From NCBI GenBank assembly GCA_051294905.1, contig CM119380.1, positions 23,064,001 to 23,128,000 on the forward strand: a DNA stretch of 64,000 nt, given 5' to 3'. This stretch comes from Botryllus schlosseri (taxonomy: Eukaryota). The position numbers were made by a program, and so were the translations under genes. Shown one piece after another: positions 167 to 35,700 of the stretch. The stretch's first letter is position 1; every line of letters starts with the position of its first letter. Below the pieces are notes generated by a model, which ran no database searches, was not told the origin of the DNA, and worked only from the letters and a program-made list of their open reading frames with translations.

Positions 167-305
167 TAGATATGGGAAGTAGTCGATTACGATTACGATT
201 ACATCGGAATTTTTTCGAATGTAATCGATTGCGATTACGATTACTTGAAAATGCTGTAATCGTCGTAATCGATTACGATTACTAATCGCGATTACCCCAT
301 GTCTG
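167..305. mobile_element. Short palindromic MITE-like element with (GATTAC)n/(GTAATC)n interior
   Basis: TAGATATGGG..CCCCATGTCTG degenerate inverted ends; tandem GATTAC/GTAATC units; no TSD found. Confidence 0.55.
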
Positions 306-357
306 ATTGTGACACGTCAAATGTCCCTGCAAAATTATAACGCGACAGCTTCTACGA

Positions 358-1489
358 TAGGGTTGCCATACGTCCGGAATTTCCCGGACATGTCCGGAAT
401 TTCACTGGAAAAATTGCGTCCGGGAGGAAATTCTAAAAAATGCCTAAATGTCCGGAATTTTGAAGGCTTGAAGAAAGCTGAAAAGTTTTTCGTAAATCAA
501 CTTACACAATATTCTTTTCAAGCAGATTTATGCTATTAGAAATTTTTCTGCGCGGTGCGCGCGAGTTAATGCAACGCATCTTGATATGAGTATGGGAACC
601 AGGCACCGCCCTCGCAAAAAATGCAATCAAACATAAATATAAATCACCATCATTTACTGAAATAAGTCTAATTGTAATCGCAATTATAAGCTCACGGCAT
701 ATTCCTAGAGTTTGTTAAGGCCGATTGGATGCTTCAGTCACAGACAGTGGTTCCAAATCTTGGGGTCGGTACTCGGTTGCCTCCATCTGCGGATCGTGGA
801 GATGTTGGACGTAATCAGCTTCCAAAATAGGAAGTGAGTAAGTTTGGGCAAGCTGATTTTATTTAGTAATCAGCTAATCAAGTTTTCGCTGGGCCACGGA
901 ACATTTCAAGTTGGAAATGAGGTCGCGACCATAAAAGGTTGGAAATCATCAGATATGCAACCTGCTGGTGAATTTTATAGTAGCCTAATATATGGAAGAT
1001 TCAACATTATTGACAGAATTCATTCATAAAATTTAACAACCAGATGATATAGTATACGTGCCCAAGACGTTACATCGATTACCCAATGGTAGGCCCAAGA
1101 TCGGTGCTTTTTTGGAGGGAGGAAGGGGGCTGGAAAAATGTTGTTTCGGACCTGGTTAAAGAACACAACTAGATAGCCGCACCGACCTAACAGTATAGCA
1201 GGGCTGTCAAACTCAATCCCGACTGGCCAGACACGGTCCGCCAGACGATTTCATCCGACCCGTGAGGAAATCCATTGCAGACCATTGCAAGTAGCAATCA
1301 CAAGAGCTCACATTACATATGACATAATTCATGACCTATGTTTCACTCTATTCTTGTATACTGTCGATGGGCAATGCTTTGCTAGTGTGACGTCATATTG
1401 ACCGACAATGTGTAATACCTCATTTGTAAATGCGCTAGTGGGCGCTATAGAGTGTCCGGAATTTGCTTCACAAAAATATGGTAACCCTA
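358..1489. mobile_element. Non-autonomous hAT-type element
   Basis: TIRs TAGGGTTGCCATA / TATGGTAACCCTA; subterminal GTCCGGAATTT repeats; perfect 8-bp TSD TTCTACGA (350-357 and 1490-1497). Confidence 0.85.
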
Positions 1490-1798
1490 TTCTACGATGT
1501 CCAGATGCATTTGTACTCTCTCTCGCGTGGTGCCTACAACTAAATATACATCAACTATGCCAAGTACAGCAACAATTTTATTCAAATATTTTTAATTGTG
1601 ATTTTTTCCGAGCCAGGCGTGAATTCACAATAGTAAATCACATTTTCAAGATGCGTGTGGAGTGTTAGTCTGCAAGGTACCGTTAAATAAGGCCTACTCG
1701 GAAAGACATTGATTTCCCCTATTATTTGTGCTGCGGCCCGCGGCGCTATCAAAAAGTAGGAAATTGGCCCGCGAGCACATTTGAGTTTGAGACCTCTG
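1199..1798. mobile_element. hAT-Charlie-like terminal fragments
   Basis: CAGGGCTGTCAAACTC at 1199 and GGCCCGCG..GAGTTTGAGACCTCTG ending at 1798; similar end CAGGGGTTGTCAACC at 4298. No shared TSD, so probably separate fragments. Confidence 0.45.
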
Positions 1799-1930
1799 GC
1801 CTAGGCCAAGGTGGGTGTCTGATTCCATCGACTACTCCAAGTCGCTTCGACAACTTCCTATCTTTTCATTGTATCGCATTTTTGAGGTGTATTGAACTGA
1901 TAAAAATTGCTAATAAACCAACGATGATGA
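1798..1930 (+). repeat. Dispersed repeat, inverted copy at ~34960-35081
   Basis: cctaggccaaggtgggtgtctgattcc..cgacaacttcctatcttttcattgtatcgca aligns by eye with the reverse complement of 34960-35081. Confidence 0.7.
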
Positions 1931-2675
1931 TTTTGACATCCTGGCTACGCAACTGTTATTGATAATGACCTGACCGGTATCACAATACACACATTGATGG
2001 CACTCGATCGCGAAACAGAGAAAAGTGTTGTCGGACAGGAATGAGAAACTGAAATCGAGTATATGTGGATCATATTCGTATTGCGTTTGTTCTACTATAT
2101 GAAATGTTGTTGAACAAAAATTTCTATCAAGCAGTCCACCGATATGATGTGGTCACCTCTGCAATATCGTTTTCAAGATCACTTTGTGCTTTCTGTGCGA
2201 TCTCCGCGTTGTCGAGATCCGGATATGTATGACATGCGCTGAAATGATAGGAGATGATCAATGTTGCACATGGTCAATAATATCATTCAACTGTGACGTG
2301 ACCTCAGATAGTGAAATACGCATGCGGTCCTTTCCATTAAACCGTCATCAAGAATTGTAAACATGTTAGCGAAATATTCAGATACGGGGCATTACCTTCG
2401 GTATGGGGAGTAATGGGATAATTAGATTTTTTAATAACACTTAACATTTTGGTTTTCATAACAGCCGTTAAAACATGAAGAAACAATTACCCGGTGAAGA
2501 CGATTCCGCTTGAGTTCAGTTTCCCAGCAACAGCTGTAACAAAAACCTAAAAGAAATATGACTCATGAGATTGGAGACGCACAATCAAAAATGATTCCAA
2601 ATCGTAATGGGCATCATTATCTTGCTGTAACTACTTTCATGGATCAAAACGAAATAGACTTATTCCTGCATGCCG

Positions 2676-5600
2676 TCAACATCTGACTGTACTACAAGCA
2701 AACGTATTTCTATCCCGTTCTCTAACCCCGTAAAGATCATAACAGTCGCTTGTCGAACGGAGACACAGGCCCCGCATGAAGGCGTCGAAACGCGGCATGG
2801 GTTTGGTACAGTAATGTATGTGAACTGGAATGAAAAGAATAATGAGAATTTGGGATAATTCTGGGATTAAGATGATCACTGACCCCATTTATTCAACCAC
2901 TTAAGAGTAGGCCTGCTATACCTGATAGGCTGATACACACCCGGAGAGACAGACCTATCTGATGCATGCGCGACCCCAAATATATTCGGCTAGCAACTTG
3001 TAGAAAAGTCTCAAAGAGGAATTTGTACCCACATGCATGAAACAGTACGAATACATCATAAATCTATACACTCACCTATAAATATCATGATCAAAACCGC
3101 GAGCGCAAATAGCACTGTAGAAATGATGAAAACATAACTGATCGCTCTGTTAATTATGTTCATGTCGTGGGAAACGTCCAGAAATTTCTTAGGAAACCTT
3201 TCAAATGTCTCACGGATTTCGTCATTGATATCATTCTGGTTGGTCACCATCACGAGTACAATATCGTGAGCTGTATATCTATAGAATAATCAAGAATTAA
3301 TGTATAAAAGGAACACAACTTAGTGTGGAATACACTCGAATCATATGCACTACAATCATTTGACAGTCCTGTCATGCATTGTTTTTGAGCTTAACAACAA
3401 TCTCGTTATTCGAACCAAGCTACCTGCAAATTACTGCCAATACTGCTAGTGTACTTAATCACTTGGTCTCGGTGTAACATAACTTAGCGACTAACTGAAA
3501 CGAGCCGCCAACTTCGGACTAGATTTGATCGATCCAGGCATGCAGCCTATTATATGACGCGCGAATACCTAAATACCAGCTCTCTGCGCTTGCTCGTTCG
3601 TTCGAGGAATAGGCTGCTTACTAATTCCAACATGATTTTTGAAACAGCAAACCTACATAGGCTCCTGGGTGGATAATCGTATAAGCAGTTGATTTGCTTG
3701 GTGCGGCTTGTCAATACTATACCCTTTTACCACTGATCGAACCATTATGTATGAACAATTGAACATCTGTCGTTTAAATTTCATGATAATTGACACGCCT
3801 TCAACAGGAAGACGATCTTGATAACCGCAAAGGCGGTACAGATAATACAATCCGTGCTATTTGGTATTATATCAATATATGATGGTCAGATCTGATGGAA
3901 CGATGGGATACCCAATTACAGAAAACTTAGAAACTCTGTTTCAACTATGGTAGCAATCGACATAGTCGGTGACTCTATTGCTTCCATCCCCTCAAGAAAA
4001 ACAATATACCACGCGGTACACACGACACAGTGCGATTTACTGAATACAGAAGGATGCTGAAACTCAGAGATACGGTCACTGTCATCTAGCATCAACCTGG
4101 GCTTAGTACCCGATGTAGAAGTGTTCCATCTTGATCTCTGCAGCTGTCATTCCTTGCCGTTAAATAGCACTGCATGTGGCGTGACGCTATTGTGGAAATG
4201 ATTTTAAACTCACAAATTCTCATCCGTGCAGCCAATCCACGATGATGTACAGGTACACTGCTGTGTACTACTGTACTGTACACTGTACGGTGTAGTGCAG
4301 GGGTTGTCAACCTTCTTTTGGCCGTGGCCCATTGTCGAGTTTGAAAATATTCTGTGGCCCGCCTCTTATCATAGTCAAGTTCAATGTGTGGTAATCGCCG
4401 CCACCGATATGCCTATTTCTGTCAAATATGCTAGCTGTACAATATACAACATAGTTGCGCCTATCGAAGTTGCGACGTCAGAGCAATAAATCCAATGATG
4501 CAATCAAATCATGTTGCTCTAACATGTGGGACATTTTTAGACCGACTCAAAACATTATTGTGCTGCGCTAATCATCAATCGATTACGATTCATTGCGGTG
4601 GTGCCCTATACTTCCACATGAAATTGAATATAGATAATAAACCGGAATTGTGGCTATTTCTATGTTACAATAATACGACCTACTGAAGTACCATTAATCT
4701 ACATCAAATGCACTTGAGTTCGAGTTTATTGCACAACCTTACAACGGCATATACGACGTATATGGCACTGCCAGAATACTTGGTTACGTCAGCATTAACT
4801 TCCACTTATTATATAATTGAAATCATTTTCGTTGCTGCTGGCCGTAGCTTGTCATGGCAGGGGCACAATAGCCGCCGTTCCCCCTCCCATTTGTGACTTG
4901 TACATTGTGACTCCATATGTGCCACTATACATCTCAACAGAGTCGGATGAAAGGCTTTGCATTCTCCATTCATGGTGAAAGCAGAAGCAATTAAAACGTG
5001 GTCTATCTCCGAACGAATTTGGTCAAAATCAGGATATGATTTGCGGTATCAAAGGCTAAGTTATTGAACAAGTGAGACGGCAGCTCACTCAAGTCAAGTT
5101 CCGATTCTTTTCCCCGTGTAGAGGGATCGTTGCGCCGTACAAACTAACTCTTTGCTGTCACCTACTGCGTTATAAATTATAAGATGACGGAGGAGCTTCT
5201 GAATACAGTCGCACACACACTAGTCACCCGCGCGTTGATTTCTCCAGATTCTATTCATTCCCACAGTCGGGATAAAGCAATTTCCGCTTATGCGTCATTG
5301 AAAAACTGCGAATACCTGCAATAAGACTCTTGCGCTTATAGTCGCATGCCCGCGTCCATTTCCGATGAAAACTGCGGTGGCGATCATCTCGCAGGGTCAT
5401 GTTCTATCAATTTTATATGCAAGAGTCATTTCTAACTAACGGGGAAGGAAGCAGTGTGGGTGATATCGGTAGCGGTTAAGACCTCGGAATAGGAGTCATC
5501 AAACGACAGAGGACGTTGATGGTATTCGTGTAGTCGTGGTGCTAAGGTCAGTTGAACGCGCGGTGCAAGATTGCATGGCGGTTCTTGAATATGTCGTGAA

Positions 5601-5882: not shown

Positions 5883-7679
5883 TACTCATCTCTTTGTGAT
5901 AGCGTGCGCAGTCGACTGTTAGAAAATCAGTGAAAATTATATCCACTAAATTTACATGCCGGTCTATATGCTTCGACAAATCTAATATATAGTCGTCGTT
6001 CGTATATTTAACATTTTCCTGTGTCTGCATTGGCTCGTGAAACAGGAAATTCTCCATGCGCCTTACATAGCACTACCGAGTAAAACCGTTTCAACGAACA
6101 AATCGATGGGTTGGCGATATTGGAGCAAAAGCTTACACGATTGCTTTATCGCGTGGCACGGGATAGATTCGGGACAAATAAACACACAACAACTCGACAT
6201 TAGTGTCGGATAATGGTTATTTCAACGTACATAATTTGCTATTGTTCGATATCGTTACATCTAATAATTTTCATAAGTGCACATGTTTTAACGAATAAGT
6301 AAGTATACTCAGCGCATTTTCCAGTGCTAAACAACATAATCAAACTGCAAGTAAAAATCAGGGAGTAATAATTTCAAAATTCTACTCAAATACTAGCATT
6401 CCTGCTTGTTACTTTAAGTCGAATTGATTCACCCAGGTATTGGGTAAAGGGTAGGCCTACTTTGTAAATTATAAAAGGACGTTTCCTCGTACTTCAATTT
6501 CTGATTTTTCTTGACCTTTAATATTCACGTTATGTAGGGGTATTCTGCAAGGAAAAACGAAGTGTTACTAGACGTAGAAATGGGATATTGCAAAAGCCAC
6601 GCCAAAAGTGTGCAGTACTGTTAAAGAACTCCATGACAAGGGCTCATTGCAAGTAACACTAAAAGTGTTCAGTATACTGTAAAAGTGCTCCATGGCGTAC
6701 TACTATAGGTATGGCAAATCTACAACGCAGACAGACAGACAGATATATCCATTCAAAAAAACTTGGCACTGATACTTGAAAGCACAACAATGTAATCTTT
6801 GTAATGGCACCTTGACCCCGAGTCTTTCGGATAATTTGCGATCTAATCCGTCGCCGATGCAAAAAGCTCAGCTGAGCGACGGTTTACATATAGGCCTACG
6901 GGTGCTGTTGCATTTTAGTCACACGTATGTTGACTGAAAGTCCTTCGAGAATGGCTATTCAGCATGCTACCACATCGAACTCGCATACCGCTGTATGGAT
7001 GTAGGCCGTCATGACTCACACCAAGCTGAATAGTTGCGTAGGAGCATTGCGCTGGCTTCCGGCTCCTAAAAGAGCGTGCTGCCATATGAGATATTCCATC
7101 CTGTACTACACAAAGTATAAACTTCAGCTTGCTTATCACTGCTAATAGTAGGTTAAATGCATTACGTGACACCGAGATAGAAATAGAAATGTCGCCAATA
7201 TTCCCAATGTGCAGGTAAAATTGAAGGCAGCTTGAGTTATTATGCACAAGACATGGCATTTATAAGCAATATTGAACTGGGCTTTGAGGACTGCCAGATA
7301 AATTAGTTTAGCAGCCGAGGATAGCATTTGCGAATTTGCTACATATATTTGGTATATCTTGAAAGTTATTAGACGGTAAGATGTCATGTAAGTTGAACTG
7401 TTAGCGCATATAGGCGTATATCATACATAGTAAATTGTAAACTTATTGCCAGATAAGCAATATGGGTTATATCGGGCATGAATACCTACCCAACAAGAGA
7501 AATGATGTTACGCTACTTCTACCGAATGCGGGAAAATTGATGATTCGGATTAGAATGGCAGGACACAGTTACGTCCACCAATTTGCTAAGTACAATAGAT
7601 GTTCCTGCGGGTACACGAAGAGTAATAATTAGGCTAACTGCAACAATCTAGGCTAAATATGTTGTATTTCACAGTAAAA

Positions 7680-29700: not shown

Positions 29701-32700
29701 TTTTTCATCATGCGCTTTTTGATATAAGAACAAACGCCAACGCCGTCTTGCTTCAGTTAGGGTATTGCGGTACATTGAGCATAACACCATGTCAACCTAA
29801 TTGTTTCAATTGACCGTTTATGATTCACAATGAGCAGACAATCGGCCGTCTGCAACGGTAGGCCAGTAAAGTAGGTTACAAACTGTAAAATGTCAAATGA
29901 AAAGCTCACTGACAGTGCAAACATCTACGATATGAACGAAATGCAGGTTGCTAAAAACTTTTGACTTTGTTAACAATTTTCACCATTACAATTTTGACAA
30001 AATTTAAACTTTTTTGGGCAAGTGTAAAATATCGCCCCACTGATCACCCAGATAACCCGAGTTTGTCCGACCCTAGTCGGGAGTACACTGTTGGCTGTCA
30101 TATTAAACATATATAAATTAAGCTTCAGCCGTCTCTTCACGTCGGTTGTTCGAATTTTTATGCTGGTGACGTCATATTTGGTGATGATACTGTTGATATG
30201 CCAAGTTCTTCAGTTCACAATTGTCTACTAGTTGCTGACGATGACCTCAGGCTAGTGTGAACCGAAAATATTTTGGTTCATTTAAAAATGAATGGAATAT
30301 TCAATTGTAATGTCATGTTCTGTACCTCCAAGAATCTCTTTATGCAAAGGCTGCGTCTTGCTCTACACCTCATTTGAATTTTGTGTTTTTCCTTTGACAT
30401 AACGCCACTGTGTTCTACAGGATTCGACTTTGTCACATCTTCGACCCGACCCAGCTCCCATCCACCCGCCAAAGTCACCGCGCCGCCAGCAGCCAAATCG
30501 TTCGTCGCAGCCAACGGCGAGACACAGCGAATCGCCACAGACACGGCACGGTAACCTGTCCAGGAATCAAAGTACCAAGATCCACAGCAATCACACCAAG
30601 GTTTGTTTCGTCCCGGAATTGATGCGTATGTTTTTGCTCGCGTTGAAACAAAACGCATGTTTTTCCCCGGAAACTCGCTGTTTCGGCTTGTTTCAGAGGT
30701 GGGATATGAGATTCGATGATGGAATAGGTTAGGTCTCTCGAAAATTGATGAAAAATAGTGCTGTTCTTGCAAGGCAGTTGGTATTTATTTCAATGTTCCT
30801 TTCATGAATTATTGCGACGGTAATATTTCAAAGCTGCAAAATGTAACGTAGGACGGAGGTCACTTTTTCTGAGATTGGGCATTTTCAAATATGGTAACCC
30901 CTATAATTTTATGCATTTTCTAATTAGTACTAAAGTGATTTTGTTGTCTCGAGCAGTCCATTTTGAGCTAATTCAATGGCCTTTGAAGTAGCTTTTCCTT
31001 TTTTCAAATTTTATCCATCAGACCGCTCATAATCGGCATTGGCATTGGTGCTAATCAATTGGCATAACTTGGAACTCGCTACAAACTTGCGTTATTTCCT
31101 CCACTCAAGCAGCATCAATAATAATAATAATTTGTCCGGAATTTATATTCTCTAATAAGATTACTCTACACTTGCATAGACCACTGGCCCACTGTTAATC
31201 TTATGAAAAGCTTCTTGGAGGCACAGAACTTTGATATAATCTTGTCTCATATTTATTGCCACTGGATGGTGCTCTGACCATACCTTTACATGGCGTAATT
31301 CAGATGTGTGCTCCTGATCGAGTGCACATCAAAATATGATAACAGAATTGAACTGTGTCATGCTGGCGACCTTCTCGTTATTTGGCGTCAAACGCAGGTA
31401 TGAATGGGCAACTGCTCAAGCATGTTGGAATACATGTGGAACTGATTAGAAATTTCGGAAAAATATTGAGCGGTAAATAAATTTGTCTGAAGCACGTCGA
31501 TCAAGAACAATGTTCCATCCAAAATAAACCAATTGCTCGGTGATTAAACTAGTTGCGTGCCAACCGCTTGTTACCATGGGCCGCGAAAAAGGTCACACAG
31601 CAACCTGTTGGTAGCTCCAAAAGTTTTGGGAGCCATGGAAAAACTCACGACCGCGATCTCGTAAGTCGCCACGTTTGTTGGGATATTGGAGCATTTGGTT
31701 GTATTAAGGTAAGCATCGCCTTACTGGACGCTGGGCGGTGCGAAACCCTAGCGGTACAACCGATACTTCCAATCACTCTCACACCCAGGAAGAGTATGGC
31801 CTTTGGCCTTCATATTCCGACCCCGGGATCTGAGTCCGCTTGACGGGCCAGTATCCCAGGCACAAGTATGGTGGCGGCGGGACAAGCCTCCGCAGACGCC
31901 CCCAGCCAAAGCCTACTTGTGCCAGCCGTTTGCACCTAAAAGTGAAGAGAAACTTGAAGGTAAAAAGAAACGGAAGCAAACCCTGATGGGTGCTTTTGAG
32001 TCCTACGAATCTTAAGTGCCCTATTACGGGCGCTTGTGGCAATAGTGCCTTGGTGTAATGCCAAGTCGCTGTCACAAGCGTGACGGGGGGGGAGGTTTAC
32101 TGCGGTTCCTCCCGGTTACCCCTAAAAAAAAAAAAAAGTTTAGTAATTAGGTATTAATATTCACACTCTACTGCGTCTCTACTCTACTACATCTTCAAAA
32201 CGGAAGCCACTGAACCTGAACTGAAAGATGACACAAGGAAGCTAGCCTCTATCATATATATTCGACATTCGTGTATATTACAATAGCATTATATTATTCA
32301 ATTATATATTGAAGTTCAGTACCTCCTCTGGAGTCTCTTCAAGTATTCTTATTGGTTGCTGTATGTGTATGTGTATGCTATTGATATATACAGGCGACTA
32401 GGCATAAGTCGCACACCTGATAACTTAAAAACTGCTTTATTTGACCAAAATGCTCGGAAACGAAGCAAAAGTTAAATTCGGACAATTCTTGTCTCAATTC
32501 GGACGCAGGCTCGCAATTCCTGTCGTTAGGTTATGGCACAATAGATAGTACTGGGTTCGTTTTAACAGAGGGCGAATGATTATAGTGAAACAGTGACGAT
32601 AAGGAACTAATACAATGCCGTGCTGGCTTCATGGTCGCTATCAATTGGGCGCAATTGCCTGGATCTTGTAGAACAGAATGGTACAGAAAAGTTAAGCAGA

Positions 32701-35700
32701 AAGAATGAAATTGCACAATAAAGAAAAAGATGAAAAAGTGAAGACGATTCCTTGGTTGCTCGATGGTTTGTTGCGTCCGTAGAAGGGATAATAAAAAGTG
32801 CCATTTGAATCCTATTTGCGCGTGTAATACAGTATTTGTTGAATGGTTTGGTATCAAAAATACTGTAGCCTGCAATACCAGTAACCTGAAGGTATAACCA
32901 TAGACCATAGTGTCCTATATGGTGTGGAAACAAGCAAATCTCACGGCTCAGTGAAATTGGTCTCCGTCACACTTTCCATTTGCCTAAAGGCGAGATCGAA
33001 ATTTGATAAAACGGGTATCAATCGGAAGCTACCGCGGTACTGATTGCGAAAATGTAAATTTGATTCTGCTCGTGGTCCTGAAACCCCCCAAAATCAGCCT
33101 CGAATGTTGGGTTGTAATGGAGTTTGGTATTGTGACGCAACCATGCCGTCTGAGCAGCTCAGAAGCAAGTGCGCACGAGAGAGTGTGAATGCTCAATCGG
33201 TTGCGCAACAATGGTCAATACCCTTGCAGTTCCGCTCCTCACCTGCTCCCTAATTCGGTCGAAAGTGAGCGGAACCAAGATATACGAATTAAGCAGAGTG
33301 ACCGTATGCAAGTCTTTTTGTTGTGTGACATGTCAAAAACCTCTCCTCTCCCATCAAGTGTTGTCACACGTCACAGCTCCGAATCCTTTTCGCAGGATTC
33401 GTTGAGAAGAATTCAGAGTGAGAAGTTATCGGCGGAACAAGCCCGTTTGGCTAGAAACGTCAGGACCACGTCGCACGAATCACCGTATGCCGTTATCAAC
33501 AAGGGCATTGACCAGCACCCAGGAAGAAAAGGTAAGACTCGCGCGGCTGGAGTTTGAGAGAAAGCTTTGCGATGTGTTACGTGGCTTGGAACTGGCGTAG
33601 AGATACTAGCTCAGTTGTTGGTTAATTCAGTCGTTTCGATTGTGAACTCTTTGATAAACTTTGGTGAAACACACACCTACACTGGACTGGATCACAAATG
33701 AAGCCCATATCGAGCTGAATTGCCTGGCATCGCTCACTGATTAGCGCGGTTCACATATAATTGTATCGCAAATGATTATAACATGGTGTTCCAAGCAAGG
33801 CCTGTCACATTGAAGAAAAAGGCCCAAAGCGGTAAATTACAATATACTGTTAAGGACATGATTATTTGTCCGAATTGGACTGCTGTTTTTTTGCGTGTCT
33901 CACGTGCACCTTAATTATAAACAATTATCTCCACTCTATGTAGCATTTTCTGGCAGTGAAGGAAATGTATGAATTATAACATCAAAAAAGCAGTACATCT
34001 ATCGTTTATTGCTGCTCATTTTTGGGACAATTCGTGGTTCAGTGGGCGGGCAGGCATCCCCGTAATTTCGAGATTCGGTTATATGTCCGACTATTCTGTC
34101 GCTTTAAATCTGAGAAATTGCATTCAAAACTAGATGTGTTGTGTACCCAACTTGGAGCACATTTTCAGCGTAACATCAATTAGACAGGGGAACTGCTCGA
34201 TACTTAATAGCACCCAAAAGCATGGATGAGGGCCGGCAATCGGTATGCTCCGCTTATGCCTGCACATAACATATATATTATGGGTATGTCGTATTTTCGG
34301 GGCTTAAAAGGGTGGACGTACCAGTGAGGATGTGCCGTCGCCTTTTGCTGAGTACTAGAAAACATCTATTGTATGTGAATAGCGAATTGATGCTGTAAAT
34401 ATCGGGTTGAAGGCGAGGCATTCGGGTGCATTCGGTTCGGCGTTCTTCACTCCTTGATTACCAGTTGAATAATATGGAGACGAAGAATCGATTTTTTTGC
34501 TCGAATGTCCGTCGGGAATGGAACGCACCTCTCGGTTGGGTTGCGAATCATTAGGTTTACGATGGCATTGCAGAATATTTTGACTCGTAACTAGATATGA
34601 GACTGGAAAATAGAATTGGCTATCTCTCTTATCTACTTTGTGGCGGGTGTACAAAACACTCATATAACAGGTCTAGTTGGCCTACGAAATTCTGATGACT
34701 TACTATTTTAGCTGGTAGGTGTGGGGAATGGGCATTCGGCAAAGGCCGCACTAGTTTTCGGGGTCTTACGCGAAAGAGACGCTTCGTACTACGTGTCGGA
34801 CTATTTTGATATCAACTCGAGATAGAGGCGGTCACTAACGAAGTCCTGATACTTTTCCACAGTAAACAAGTATATATATATATTGCTTGATTGCGAAACT
34901 CGGTTAAGCAGTTATGTTTTAAACTACTTCCACTTTAACAGTTCATAGTCATTTCAATTCGATTTATTATTAACAATTTCATTATTTTAATACACCGCAA
35001 GACTGCGACACAGTGAAAAGGTAGGAAGGTGTCGTAACGGCTTGCAGTAGTCTTCGGAATCGGACACCCACCAGGCCTAGGCGATGTAAAAAGGTGGCGT
35101 GCACAATGAATGAAAAGTAAATGATTATATAATAAAAGAATAGGCGACAAAACAGGTGGCGTGTGTCGGAAGGGGAGCGCGTTAGGTCAGGTCGTGGTCC
35201 TGTAAACTTGAGGACGGACTGGTATTGATTCGGTAGCATTTGTTATTATTTCAACAAAGCATTGTTTTCGCTTTGGATTCGGAAAAGTAGAGAGTAGTTT
35301 TGGGGACAAGTTTGCGTCGCCGTCATGAGTGATATTATCATAAAAATTGGGGGCAATTAGCACCAGTATTACGGCAAACTATATAGATAGTGTCATCCGT
35401 CATTTGTTTCGGTCGCTATGATGCGTCTTGCGATTTCGATAGCAGCCGCCTACGTTTGACTGTAAAAGTATGCAATGCCTCTTCCAAATCTACTGATTGA
35501 AGCTACTTATTTGAATACTTTTCACGCCTTGCATTATTGTCTATTTTCACGTGAAGTAGTATTAACATGTCTGGGAAGTCGATACTTCTATTTGTAGTTG
35601 AGTAGAAAGGCGTGGCGTTGGCGTTACTTCTACTGGAGTAGCATTGCTGACCAGTGACCATCTATGGATAATAATAATAATCGGTGATATGATCTTGTAA

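Follow-up and report, generated by a model that had tools for sequence, protein, structure and literature searches.

Does the poly(A)-tailed stretch at 31550-32137 of the DNA analysed here belong to a known class of mobile element? The DNA, referred to as the window, is 64,000 nucleotides of the Botryllus schlosseri genome (GenBank assembly GCA_051294905.1, contig CM119380.1, positions 23,064,001 to 23,128,000 of the forward strand), and the coordinates given are those of the window. An initial annotation made from the letters alone had described this stretch as an almost fully base-paired element of about 590 nt and of unknown class. It was proposed to be a retrocopied non-coding RNA or a non-autonomous derivative of a long interspersed nuclear element (LINE), with an RNA that folds and possibly cleaves itself. 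Our analysis indicates that it is very probably a member of a family of structured retroposons which resemble short interspersed nuclear elements (SINEs), carry a spliced leader (SL) at their head and are mobilised by LINEs, and that window positions 31685-32137 are an inert intronic retrocopy of this family.

The extent of the element was determined by searching the window's own genome (495.5 Mb). With the 588 nt of the initial annotation as query, 49 scored matches (from 223 candidates) with 83-97% identity were found, all of them within query positions of about 129-588. BLAST comparison of the fetched loci gave a shared block corresponding to 31681-32137. The element occupies 31685-32137 (453 bp, 439 nt plus A14), that is, the last 453 of the 588 nt. 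The 311 nt upstream of it are single copy in the genome, and the first 135 nt of the stretch, which are also single copy and fold no better than shuffled sequence, had been included in error. Two structures placed at the 5' end, the CCATGG/CCATGG stems and a possible pseudoknot (GCGTG/CACGT and CCAAC/GTTGG), lie outside the element and found no support. The window copy carries 8 additional 5' bases that resemble a garbled piece of the leader, and comparable 5' extras are present in two other copies (L010, L012). In the following features a slash marks the insertion point.

31550-31684, no strand: outside the element; single-copy intronic DNA (one genomic match; fold z = +1.0, with 169 of 200 shuffles at least as good; RNA depth 0)
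31685-32137, + strand: complete copy of the SL-headed non-autonomous retroposon (genomic matches begin at about query 129-197 and stop at the poly(A); flanks single copy or unrelated)
31685-31708, + strand: copy of the spliced-leader exon, 24 nt, with C for T at 31692 (the family form equals the published SL)
31709-31718, + strand: GTAAGCATCG, a 5' splice-donor consensus right after the SL exon and at the same time the landing motif G/T[AG]AGCATCG (insertion point between 31709 and 31710)
32124-32137, + strand: poly(A) tail, A14 (read directly)

The marks of retroposition were found in the relatives of this copy. All full copies end in an A-run at the 3' side, and many of the relatives are flanked by target-site duplications (TSDs) of 7-17 bp (15 bp in L005, 14 bp in L022, 16 bp in L012 and 15 bp in L026). 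One 11-bp TSD surrounds a whole array of three units in L002. For the window copy the best TSD candidate was GTTT only (31673-31676 and 32138-32141), in agreement with the initial annotation, which had also been right about the A14 tail and about the missing tRNA head and reverse transcriptase reading frame. No open reading frame (ORF) is present inside the element, ARAGORN detected no tRNA in it, and Rfam 15 (both strands, E<=1) gave no family inside it, with no tRNA, 5S, 7SL or ribozyme motif. The same search on six further family loci gave no ribozyme and no U1 or U2 match. The element is thus short, non-autonomous and dispersed, with TSDs and a 3' A-rich tail, as SINEs are. It is not a SINE in the strict RNA polymerase III sense, with a head from tRNA, 5S or 7SL RNA and internal A and B boxes, as its head is an SL exon with a splice donor; a box-B-like GGTGCGAAACC is present in the element without a box A. 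The window copy itself is a dead, inert intronic insertion.

Three other readings of the structure were tried and rejected. A tRNA-like reading of the three-way junction, with a 7-bp 'acceptor' stem and GGTGCGAAACC as a T-loop-like part, was negative with ARAGORN and Rfam. Two hairpins with loop-loop pairing were compared with the Alu domain of the signal recognition particle (SRP) RNA, and Rfam gave no SRP match. A telomerase RNA was considered from the motif AACCCTA, which is not kept among the subfamilies.

Family size was estimated from short diagnostic strings, each with a control count of 0. The family is small: with <=3 mismatches allowed, 83 matches to a 35-nt core (31871-31905) were counted genome-wide (54 exact), whereas a 19-mer from the 3' hairpin was counted 170 times and a 20-mer of the SL 351 times. 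The last count is far above that of the core because other elements bear the leader too. Nearest relatives are 93-99% identical, yet the pairwise mean is only about 85%, transitions are about as frequent as transversions and CpG decay is absent, which together point to many small subfamilies of deep origin and not to a single burst in decay. At about 22.1-24.7 Mb on C14 of G000, outside the window, 13 of the 83 cores are clustered together with many A6+TAAGCATCG junctions; this may reflect an abundance of leader-type landing pads or SL-type genes in the region.

The element is defined by its head. The first 24 nt of the family, ATTGGAGTATTTGGTTGTATTAAG, agree in every base with the SL published for the stolidobranch ascidians Halocynthia roretzi and Polyandrocarpa misakiensis; relative to the SL of Botryllus schlosseri they lack only the initial G (PMC3795323, Table 1 and supplements). 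This leader points to a stolidobranch ascidian as the host. The window copy differs from this sequence by one mismatch (C at 31692). The boundary between the SL exon and GTAAGCATCG reads AAG/GTAAGC, the consensus 5' splice site, so that 31685-31710 consists of an SL exon followed by a 5' splice site, as in a functional SL RNA gene. A small (about 50-150 nt), non-polyadenylated SL RNA with an Sm site is not what follows: the element has 453 bp, an A14 tail and TSD-flanked relatives. The upstream DNA is different at every copy, and the retrocopies lack an upstream promoter of the small nuclear RNA (snRNA) type. A search for the true SL RNA with a read-derived motif following GTAAGCATCG gave no contiguous genomic match, and the motif turned out to come from a sister family's head; for one read-derived-motif search the control was void as the pattern is a mirror palindrome. 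Full-text searches of the literature found no paper on the leader-plus-donor string or on an SL-headed SINE.

The 10 nt after the leader are also a preferred landing site. Among loci fetched with the element itself, which makes the sample unbiased, 16 of 34 3' junctions abut T[AG]AGCATCG directly after the poly(A). In the whole genome A6+T[AG]AGCATCG was found 93 times, compared with 5 for the control. These sites are mostly in a foldback repeat, each arm of which reads ...AAATTTGG/TGAGCATCGTTTC..., and the rest are in the element's own head (GG/TAAGCATCG, 31708-31718). The foldback repeat is the main landing pad of LINE and SINE alike: about 70 of the 93 junctions are of the G form, and every G-form junction sampled runs on into the repeat. 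It might be a diverged head-to-head pair of SL-like genes. At L076:2000-2270 and L074:1980-2250 the repeat has two inverted arms, each with ...AAATTTGG/TGAGCATCGTTTCTATAGACAGCC....

Several other poly(A) elements are inserted at the same motif, among them LINE families with an ORF1 (CCHC) and an ORF2 (APE endonuclease and reverse transcriptase, RT). In two full LINE copies (L074 and L076) ORF1 carries CCHC knuckles, and ORF2, about 1155 aa long, encodes both the APE endonuclease and the reverse transcriptase. Their TSDs consist of 10-11 bp of the landing motif, and their 5' ends begin with the leader. These candidate partner LINEs are Tx1-like in their features (APE+RT ORF2, CCHC ORF1, site-specific insertion, poly(A)). 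They also resemble Tx1L/Tx1D of Xenopus and other LINEs of the Tx1/R1 clades in using one site within another repeat, here the foldback.

The leader could also have been gained by ordinary trans-splicing of a precursor, with GTAAGCATCG merely the start of the acceptor exon, an origin that we consider unlikely. It would account for LINE copies in which the SL is joined to unrelated sequence without the full motif (...TTAAGG/CCGC in L076, ...TTCAG/ATTCG in L074), and a flatworm study on LINE and LTR loci that bear the SL reads partial-SL loci as trans-splicing products (PMC12582326). However, G and then T follow AAG in most of the independent element types (the SINE and its sister families), and the 10 nt after the SL are consensus donor, LINE landing motif and typical TSD all together, as a copied exon/intron boundary predicts and as chance would rarely produce. 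We infer that the head was copied from an SL RNA gene across its exon/intron boundary and did not arise by trans-splicing. The last 9 nt of this putative copied boundary are the usual TSD.

A second alternative is that the element is an internally deleted LINE, composed of the 5' and 3' untranslated regions of an autonomous partner, instead of a composite SINE. Modules common to sister families would agree with this, as would the excess of the 3' hairpin 19-mer over the core (170 against 83 occurrences), which shows that the same tail is present on other elements. On the other hand, four LINE copies of different families have only the SL in common with the element, no copy reaches into coding sequence, and the 5' starts cluster at positions 1 and 26 and are not scattered as in 5'-truncated LINEs. 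We regard such an origin as decidedly improbable. The check for genomic copies and a parent LINE suggested with the initial annotation was successful in its first part: copies were found, and no LINE with the body or 3' hairpin in common was seen among the four LINE copies examined.

A sister family of 700 bp (L025:1945-2641, minus strand, and about 15 relatives in L031-L042) has the same 34-nt head, one hairpin module in common and a related 3' hairpin, with a body that is otherwise different. The superfamily to which both belong is modular. The 700-bp sister element was also used as a query for a longer parent, and only about 15 short, ORF-free copies were obtained.

As the landing motif lies in the element's own head, copies stack head to tail and many of them start at position 26. 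In L025 a 697-bp sister element is inserted between head positions 3-34 and 26-452 of one copy and flanked by TAAGCATCG repeats, and in L046 the SINE head is interrupted in the same way by a fragment of 125 bp that ends in poly(A). The later units of tandem arrays all start at position 26 or a variant of it with a deletion, and nested insertions and tandem units begin exactly at the motif of 31709-31718. Every new copy thereby adds a further landing pad, and the recurrent start at position 26 is then the junction at the target motif and not a site of RNA cleavage, which bears on the ribozyme carrier that the initial annotation had suggested. That proposal could draw on the 5' end recurring at position 26 in at least 10 copies, on a conserved CGAAAC and on compact helices nearby, with position 26 as the cleavage site. 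It is hardly credible in view of the other evidence: no Rfam ribozyme family was found at E<=1, every position-26 start is preceded by the poly(A) of another element and equals an insertion at the target motif T[AG]AGCATCG, and RNA 5' ends are not piled up there (no such pile at 31710 in four sequencing runs). A hammerhead fitted by hand around CGAAAC and the position-26 start lacked the CUGANGA core.

Next to the head and the landing site, the fold is the third property of the family. The 588 nt of the initial annotation fold at -225.5 kcal/mol (z = -5.1), and this signal comes wholly from the 3' part. For 31685-32123 the fold was better than all shuffles on the + strand (z = -5.85; 0 of 100 as good) and had z = -3.49 on the - strand. 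Distinct copies and diverged relatives, 39 sequences in all, were aligned, and from the alignment RNAalifold predicted 80 pairs, of which 11 show compensatory changes. A manual model comprises 111 pairs in 16 helices, one drawn as a pseudoknot. Under this model 94.9% of the cells are paired, as compared to 91.0% with shuffled partners (reached in 0 of 500) and 37-45% when the partners are slid by 1-3 columns. Changes on both sides of a pair were seen in 152 cells, where shuffled partners gave 54 (152 reached in 0 of 500) and slid partners 11-22. Compensatory change was seen in 17 pairs, several of which occur with three Watson-Crick types, indicating repeated independent switches. G.U cells outnumber A.C cells by 245 to 41, and the poly(A)-bearing + strand is thus the folded molecule. 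The secondary structure is kept by compensatory substitutions and is under selection. Its parts are as follows.

31685-31773, + strand: head domain (helices 1-5; 87-98% of cells paired)
31788-31818, + strand: hairpin GGAA...GGCC/GGCC...TTCC (helices 6-7; 98% paired; one pair is A-U in 20, G-C in 16 and C-G in 2 copies)
31825-31857, + strand: hairpin GGGATCTG.GTCCG / CGGGC.CAG.ATCCC (helix 8; 88% paired; 4 compensatory pairs, for example one that is C-G in 20 copies and A-U in 17)
31859-31923, + strand: long stem-loop with a 10-bp outer stem and inner helices around the near-invariant 35-nt core 31871-31905 (helices 9-11; 97-99% paired; the outer pair varies between U-A, with 25 copies, and G-C, with 13)
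31924-31992, + strand: A-rich variable linker without supported structure (poorly alignable between subfamilies)
31993-32016, + strand: 9-bp hairpin (helix 12; 4 covarying pairs; one pair is G-C in 15, A-U in 14 and U-A in 7 copies)
32030-32081, + strand: 11-bp stem GCGCTTGTGGC / GCTGTCACAAGCGT (32030-32040 with 32071-32081) around a CTTGG/CCAAG hairpin (helices 13-14; 99% and 88% paired; one pair of the inner hairpin is A-U in 16, G-C in 11 and U-A in 5 copies)
32090-32113, + strand: conserved 3' hairpin GGGAGG...CCTCCC just before the tail (helices 15-16; 97-100% paired; 2 covarying pairs)

In the head the SL exon pairs with 31763-31773, and GGTTGTA (31697-31703) pairs with TACAACC (31755-31761). 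Two hairpins stand within it (31709-31724 and 31729-31753), and a contact between their loops (31714-31719/31735-31740) covaries, with the pair 31719/31735 switched from C-G to G-C in 12 copies. This contact may be modelled either as a pseudoknot or as an alternative nested stem, as drawn by RNAalifold. In the window copy the hairpin at 31993-32016 is interrupted by an internal TT/TT mismatch and a single A-G mismatch. The hairpin at 32090-32113 is a candidate for the element recognised by the reverse transcriptase.

Most of the 3' stems listed in the initial annotation were recovered. Across the 39 family members the stems GGTTGTA/TACAACC, GTAAG/CTTAC, GGGAT/ATCCC with its inner stem, GGCACAAGTA/TACTTGTGCC and GGGAGG/CCTCCC hold, and so does CGCTGG/CCTAGCG, which is the weakest (87% paired). 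Three further stems, GTTTGC/GCAAAC, AAGTGCCC/GGGCGCTT and GTCAC/GTGAC, did not stand: they are 78% paired with covariation not above controls, and on the support of the alignment they are replaced by the 32030-32040/32071-32081 stem with its CTTGG/CCAAG hairpin and by the hairpin at 31993-32016. In its interpretation the annotation was essentially right about a retrocopied, LINE-dependent folded RNA, as the family is dispersed, non-coding and poly(A)-tailed, with TSDs and compensatory changes. Both of the structural checks proposed with it, folding against shuffles and covariation among copies, came out in favour of this part, whereas the ribozyme found no support, and the SL head with its donor had been missed.

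Four raw RNA-seq runs with the same species label were mapped on 31450-32350 at 90% likeness. The flanking intron had a depth of 0, and 31685-31728 was covered by hundreds to thousands of reads. The sequence of the template-switch oligo adjoins 31685 in 240-3909 reads per run, which places the 5' ends of the RNAs at the first base of the leader. Reads cross the exon/GT boundary up to 31718 and then diverge into the heads of sister subfamilies. The body (31729-31945) was covered 200-1500x in two runs and the 3' hairpin 27-170x; in the variable linker the depth falls to about 0, because the expressed copies belong to other subfamilies. In one run (X19) 2409 reads join the leader and GTAAGCA straight to the last 350 nt or so of a LINE (L075:7618-7974, with the joint at 7618-7647). 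This species is a 5'-truncated LINE fragment in a leader head that is strongly transcribed from the leader start.

Such RNAs raise the question whether the copies could be functional SL RNA genes of unusual length, or decoys, that donate the leader or compete for it. The SL exon is intact and followed by a consensus donor, RNAs that look capped start abundantly at SL +1, and the selected structure pairs the SL exon with downstream sequence, all of which fits this proposal. Poly(A) tails, TSDs, dispersal, a length of about 450 nt and the lack of a recognised Sm-site-like motif speak against it, as do retrocopies without an upstream snRNA-type promoter, and we judge it very improbable.

Several observations weigh against an SL-headed, LINE-mobilised family and limit what can be read from the data. 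No U-rich Sm-like site was recognised by eye in the head, and the case for GTAAGCATCG as the true start of an SL intron would be built from its donor consensus and its role as a target. For about half of the insertions the site is unrelated. The landing motif is common to APE+RT LINEs and the element, and the element's body and 3' hairpin are absent from all four LINE copies examined. Strand information is missing from the RNA libraries, whose runs are tied to the genome by the species label only; moreover, all reads have T at 31692 where the window copy has C, and the window copy is therefore not their source. Covariation among retrocopies mirrors how the master genes evolved, and the shuffle test is inflated because the copies are related. 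The slid controls partly meet this objection, and together with the multi-type pairs they make the stronger argument.

Taken together with these reservations, an SL-headed family spread by LINEs would work in the following way. The family RNA starts with the 24-nt SL exon, continues with the GT donor and the next 8 nt, then with a stem-loop body of about 400 nt, and ends with the terminal hairpin and poly(A), its head resembling the start of an unspliced SL RNA. It would be copied through target-primed reverse transcription by LINEs with APE endonuclease and RT, which would nick preferentially at G/T[AG]AGCATCG, a motif resembling the SL donor site. Productive master copies may sit at the donor sites of SL-type genes and be transcribed from the upstream promoter of the SL gene, in the way R2 or SLACS use their targets. 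The structured body, with its conserved core and 3' hairpin, may be retained for LINE proteins or for RNA stability, and pairing of leader and donor may shield the RNA from consumption in trans-splicing. A bolder version, of which we are rather doubtful, sees in the family a parasite of trans-splicing, with masters at SL-type donor sites that start at SL +1, hide leader and donor from the spliceosome in a selected fold of about 400 nt and recruit the LINE machinery; the abundant family RNAs might in addition act as decoys or alternative leader donors.

Classical SINEs have heads derived from tRNA, 5S or 7SL RNA, and the U1/U2 heads of SINEU were the first exception. SINEU elements have a landing site within a Mariner element in common with Tx1-Mar LINEs and no recognisable internal promoter (Kojima 2015, PMC4494074). 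The family described here is of the same kind, a SINE-like retroposon with an snRNA-type head, and the label 'unknown class' was too strong. As judged from the published SL and the GT donor, its 5' part corresponds to the start of an Sm-class small RNA of RNA polymerase II. Both are short, non-coding and without a recognisable internal pol III promoter, both prefer a landing site within another repeat that is common with APE-type LINEs, and for SINEU transcription from flanking or target promoters has likewise been proposed (PMC4494074). They differ in the head, which here is an SL exon with its donor instead of U1/U2, and in the landing motif, which here lies within the head so that copies stack. 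The body here is long, strongly structured and covarying, and family RNAs are abundant, whereas none were detected for SINEU.

Retrotransposons without long terminal repeats that are specific for SL genes include SLACS, CZAR and CRE1/2 of trypanosomatids and NeSL-1 of nematodes, and they can borrow the transcription start of the SL gene. These elements are autonomous and have a restriction-like endonuclease, and to our knowledge none have been described from chordates. They are retroelements landing in SL sequences, as here, whereas the present family has APE LINE partners, a chordate host and the part of a non-autonomous rider. NeSL is mentioned in PMC4640811. In flatworms, genomic repeats that start with a partial leader were read as reverse-transcribed SL-carrying RNAs (PMC12582326); there only the leader is present, in contrast to the donor and intron start, structured body and site preference found here. 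An SL exon with its donor as the head of a SINE links retroposition to trans-splicing in a chordate, and the self-propagating landing pad accounts for the stacked arrays. The family also provides a natural example of a retroposon with a long non-coding RNA for which selection on the fold can be demonstrated. It opens the transcription of the element, its recognition by LINEs and the interference of leader-bearing parasite RNAs with trans-splicing to study.

Some minor observations concern other sequences. At L057:978-1081 a U6 snRNA (Rfam, 93.9 bits) is joined head to tail with a diverged SL-headed family member; this fusion is a template-switch chimera, typical of L1-group reverse transcriptases. 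Just upstream of the copy in L019 a U6-like 3' part lies within a palindrome. In the window, outside the element, a RAGATH-25 match at 32893-32955 (23.8 bits, against a gathering score of 49) is almost certainly due to chance. The downstream flank at 32267-32347 holds an unrelated 60-80-bp repeat, of which 40 copies were scored genome-wide from 249 candidates, probably the end of a miniature transposon, and a few dozen RNA reads fall on 32287-32348.

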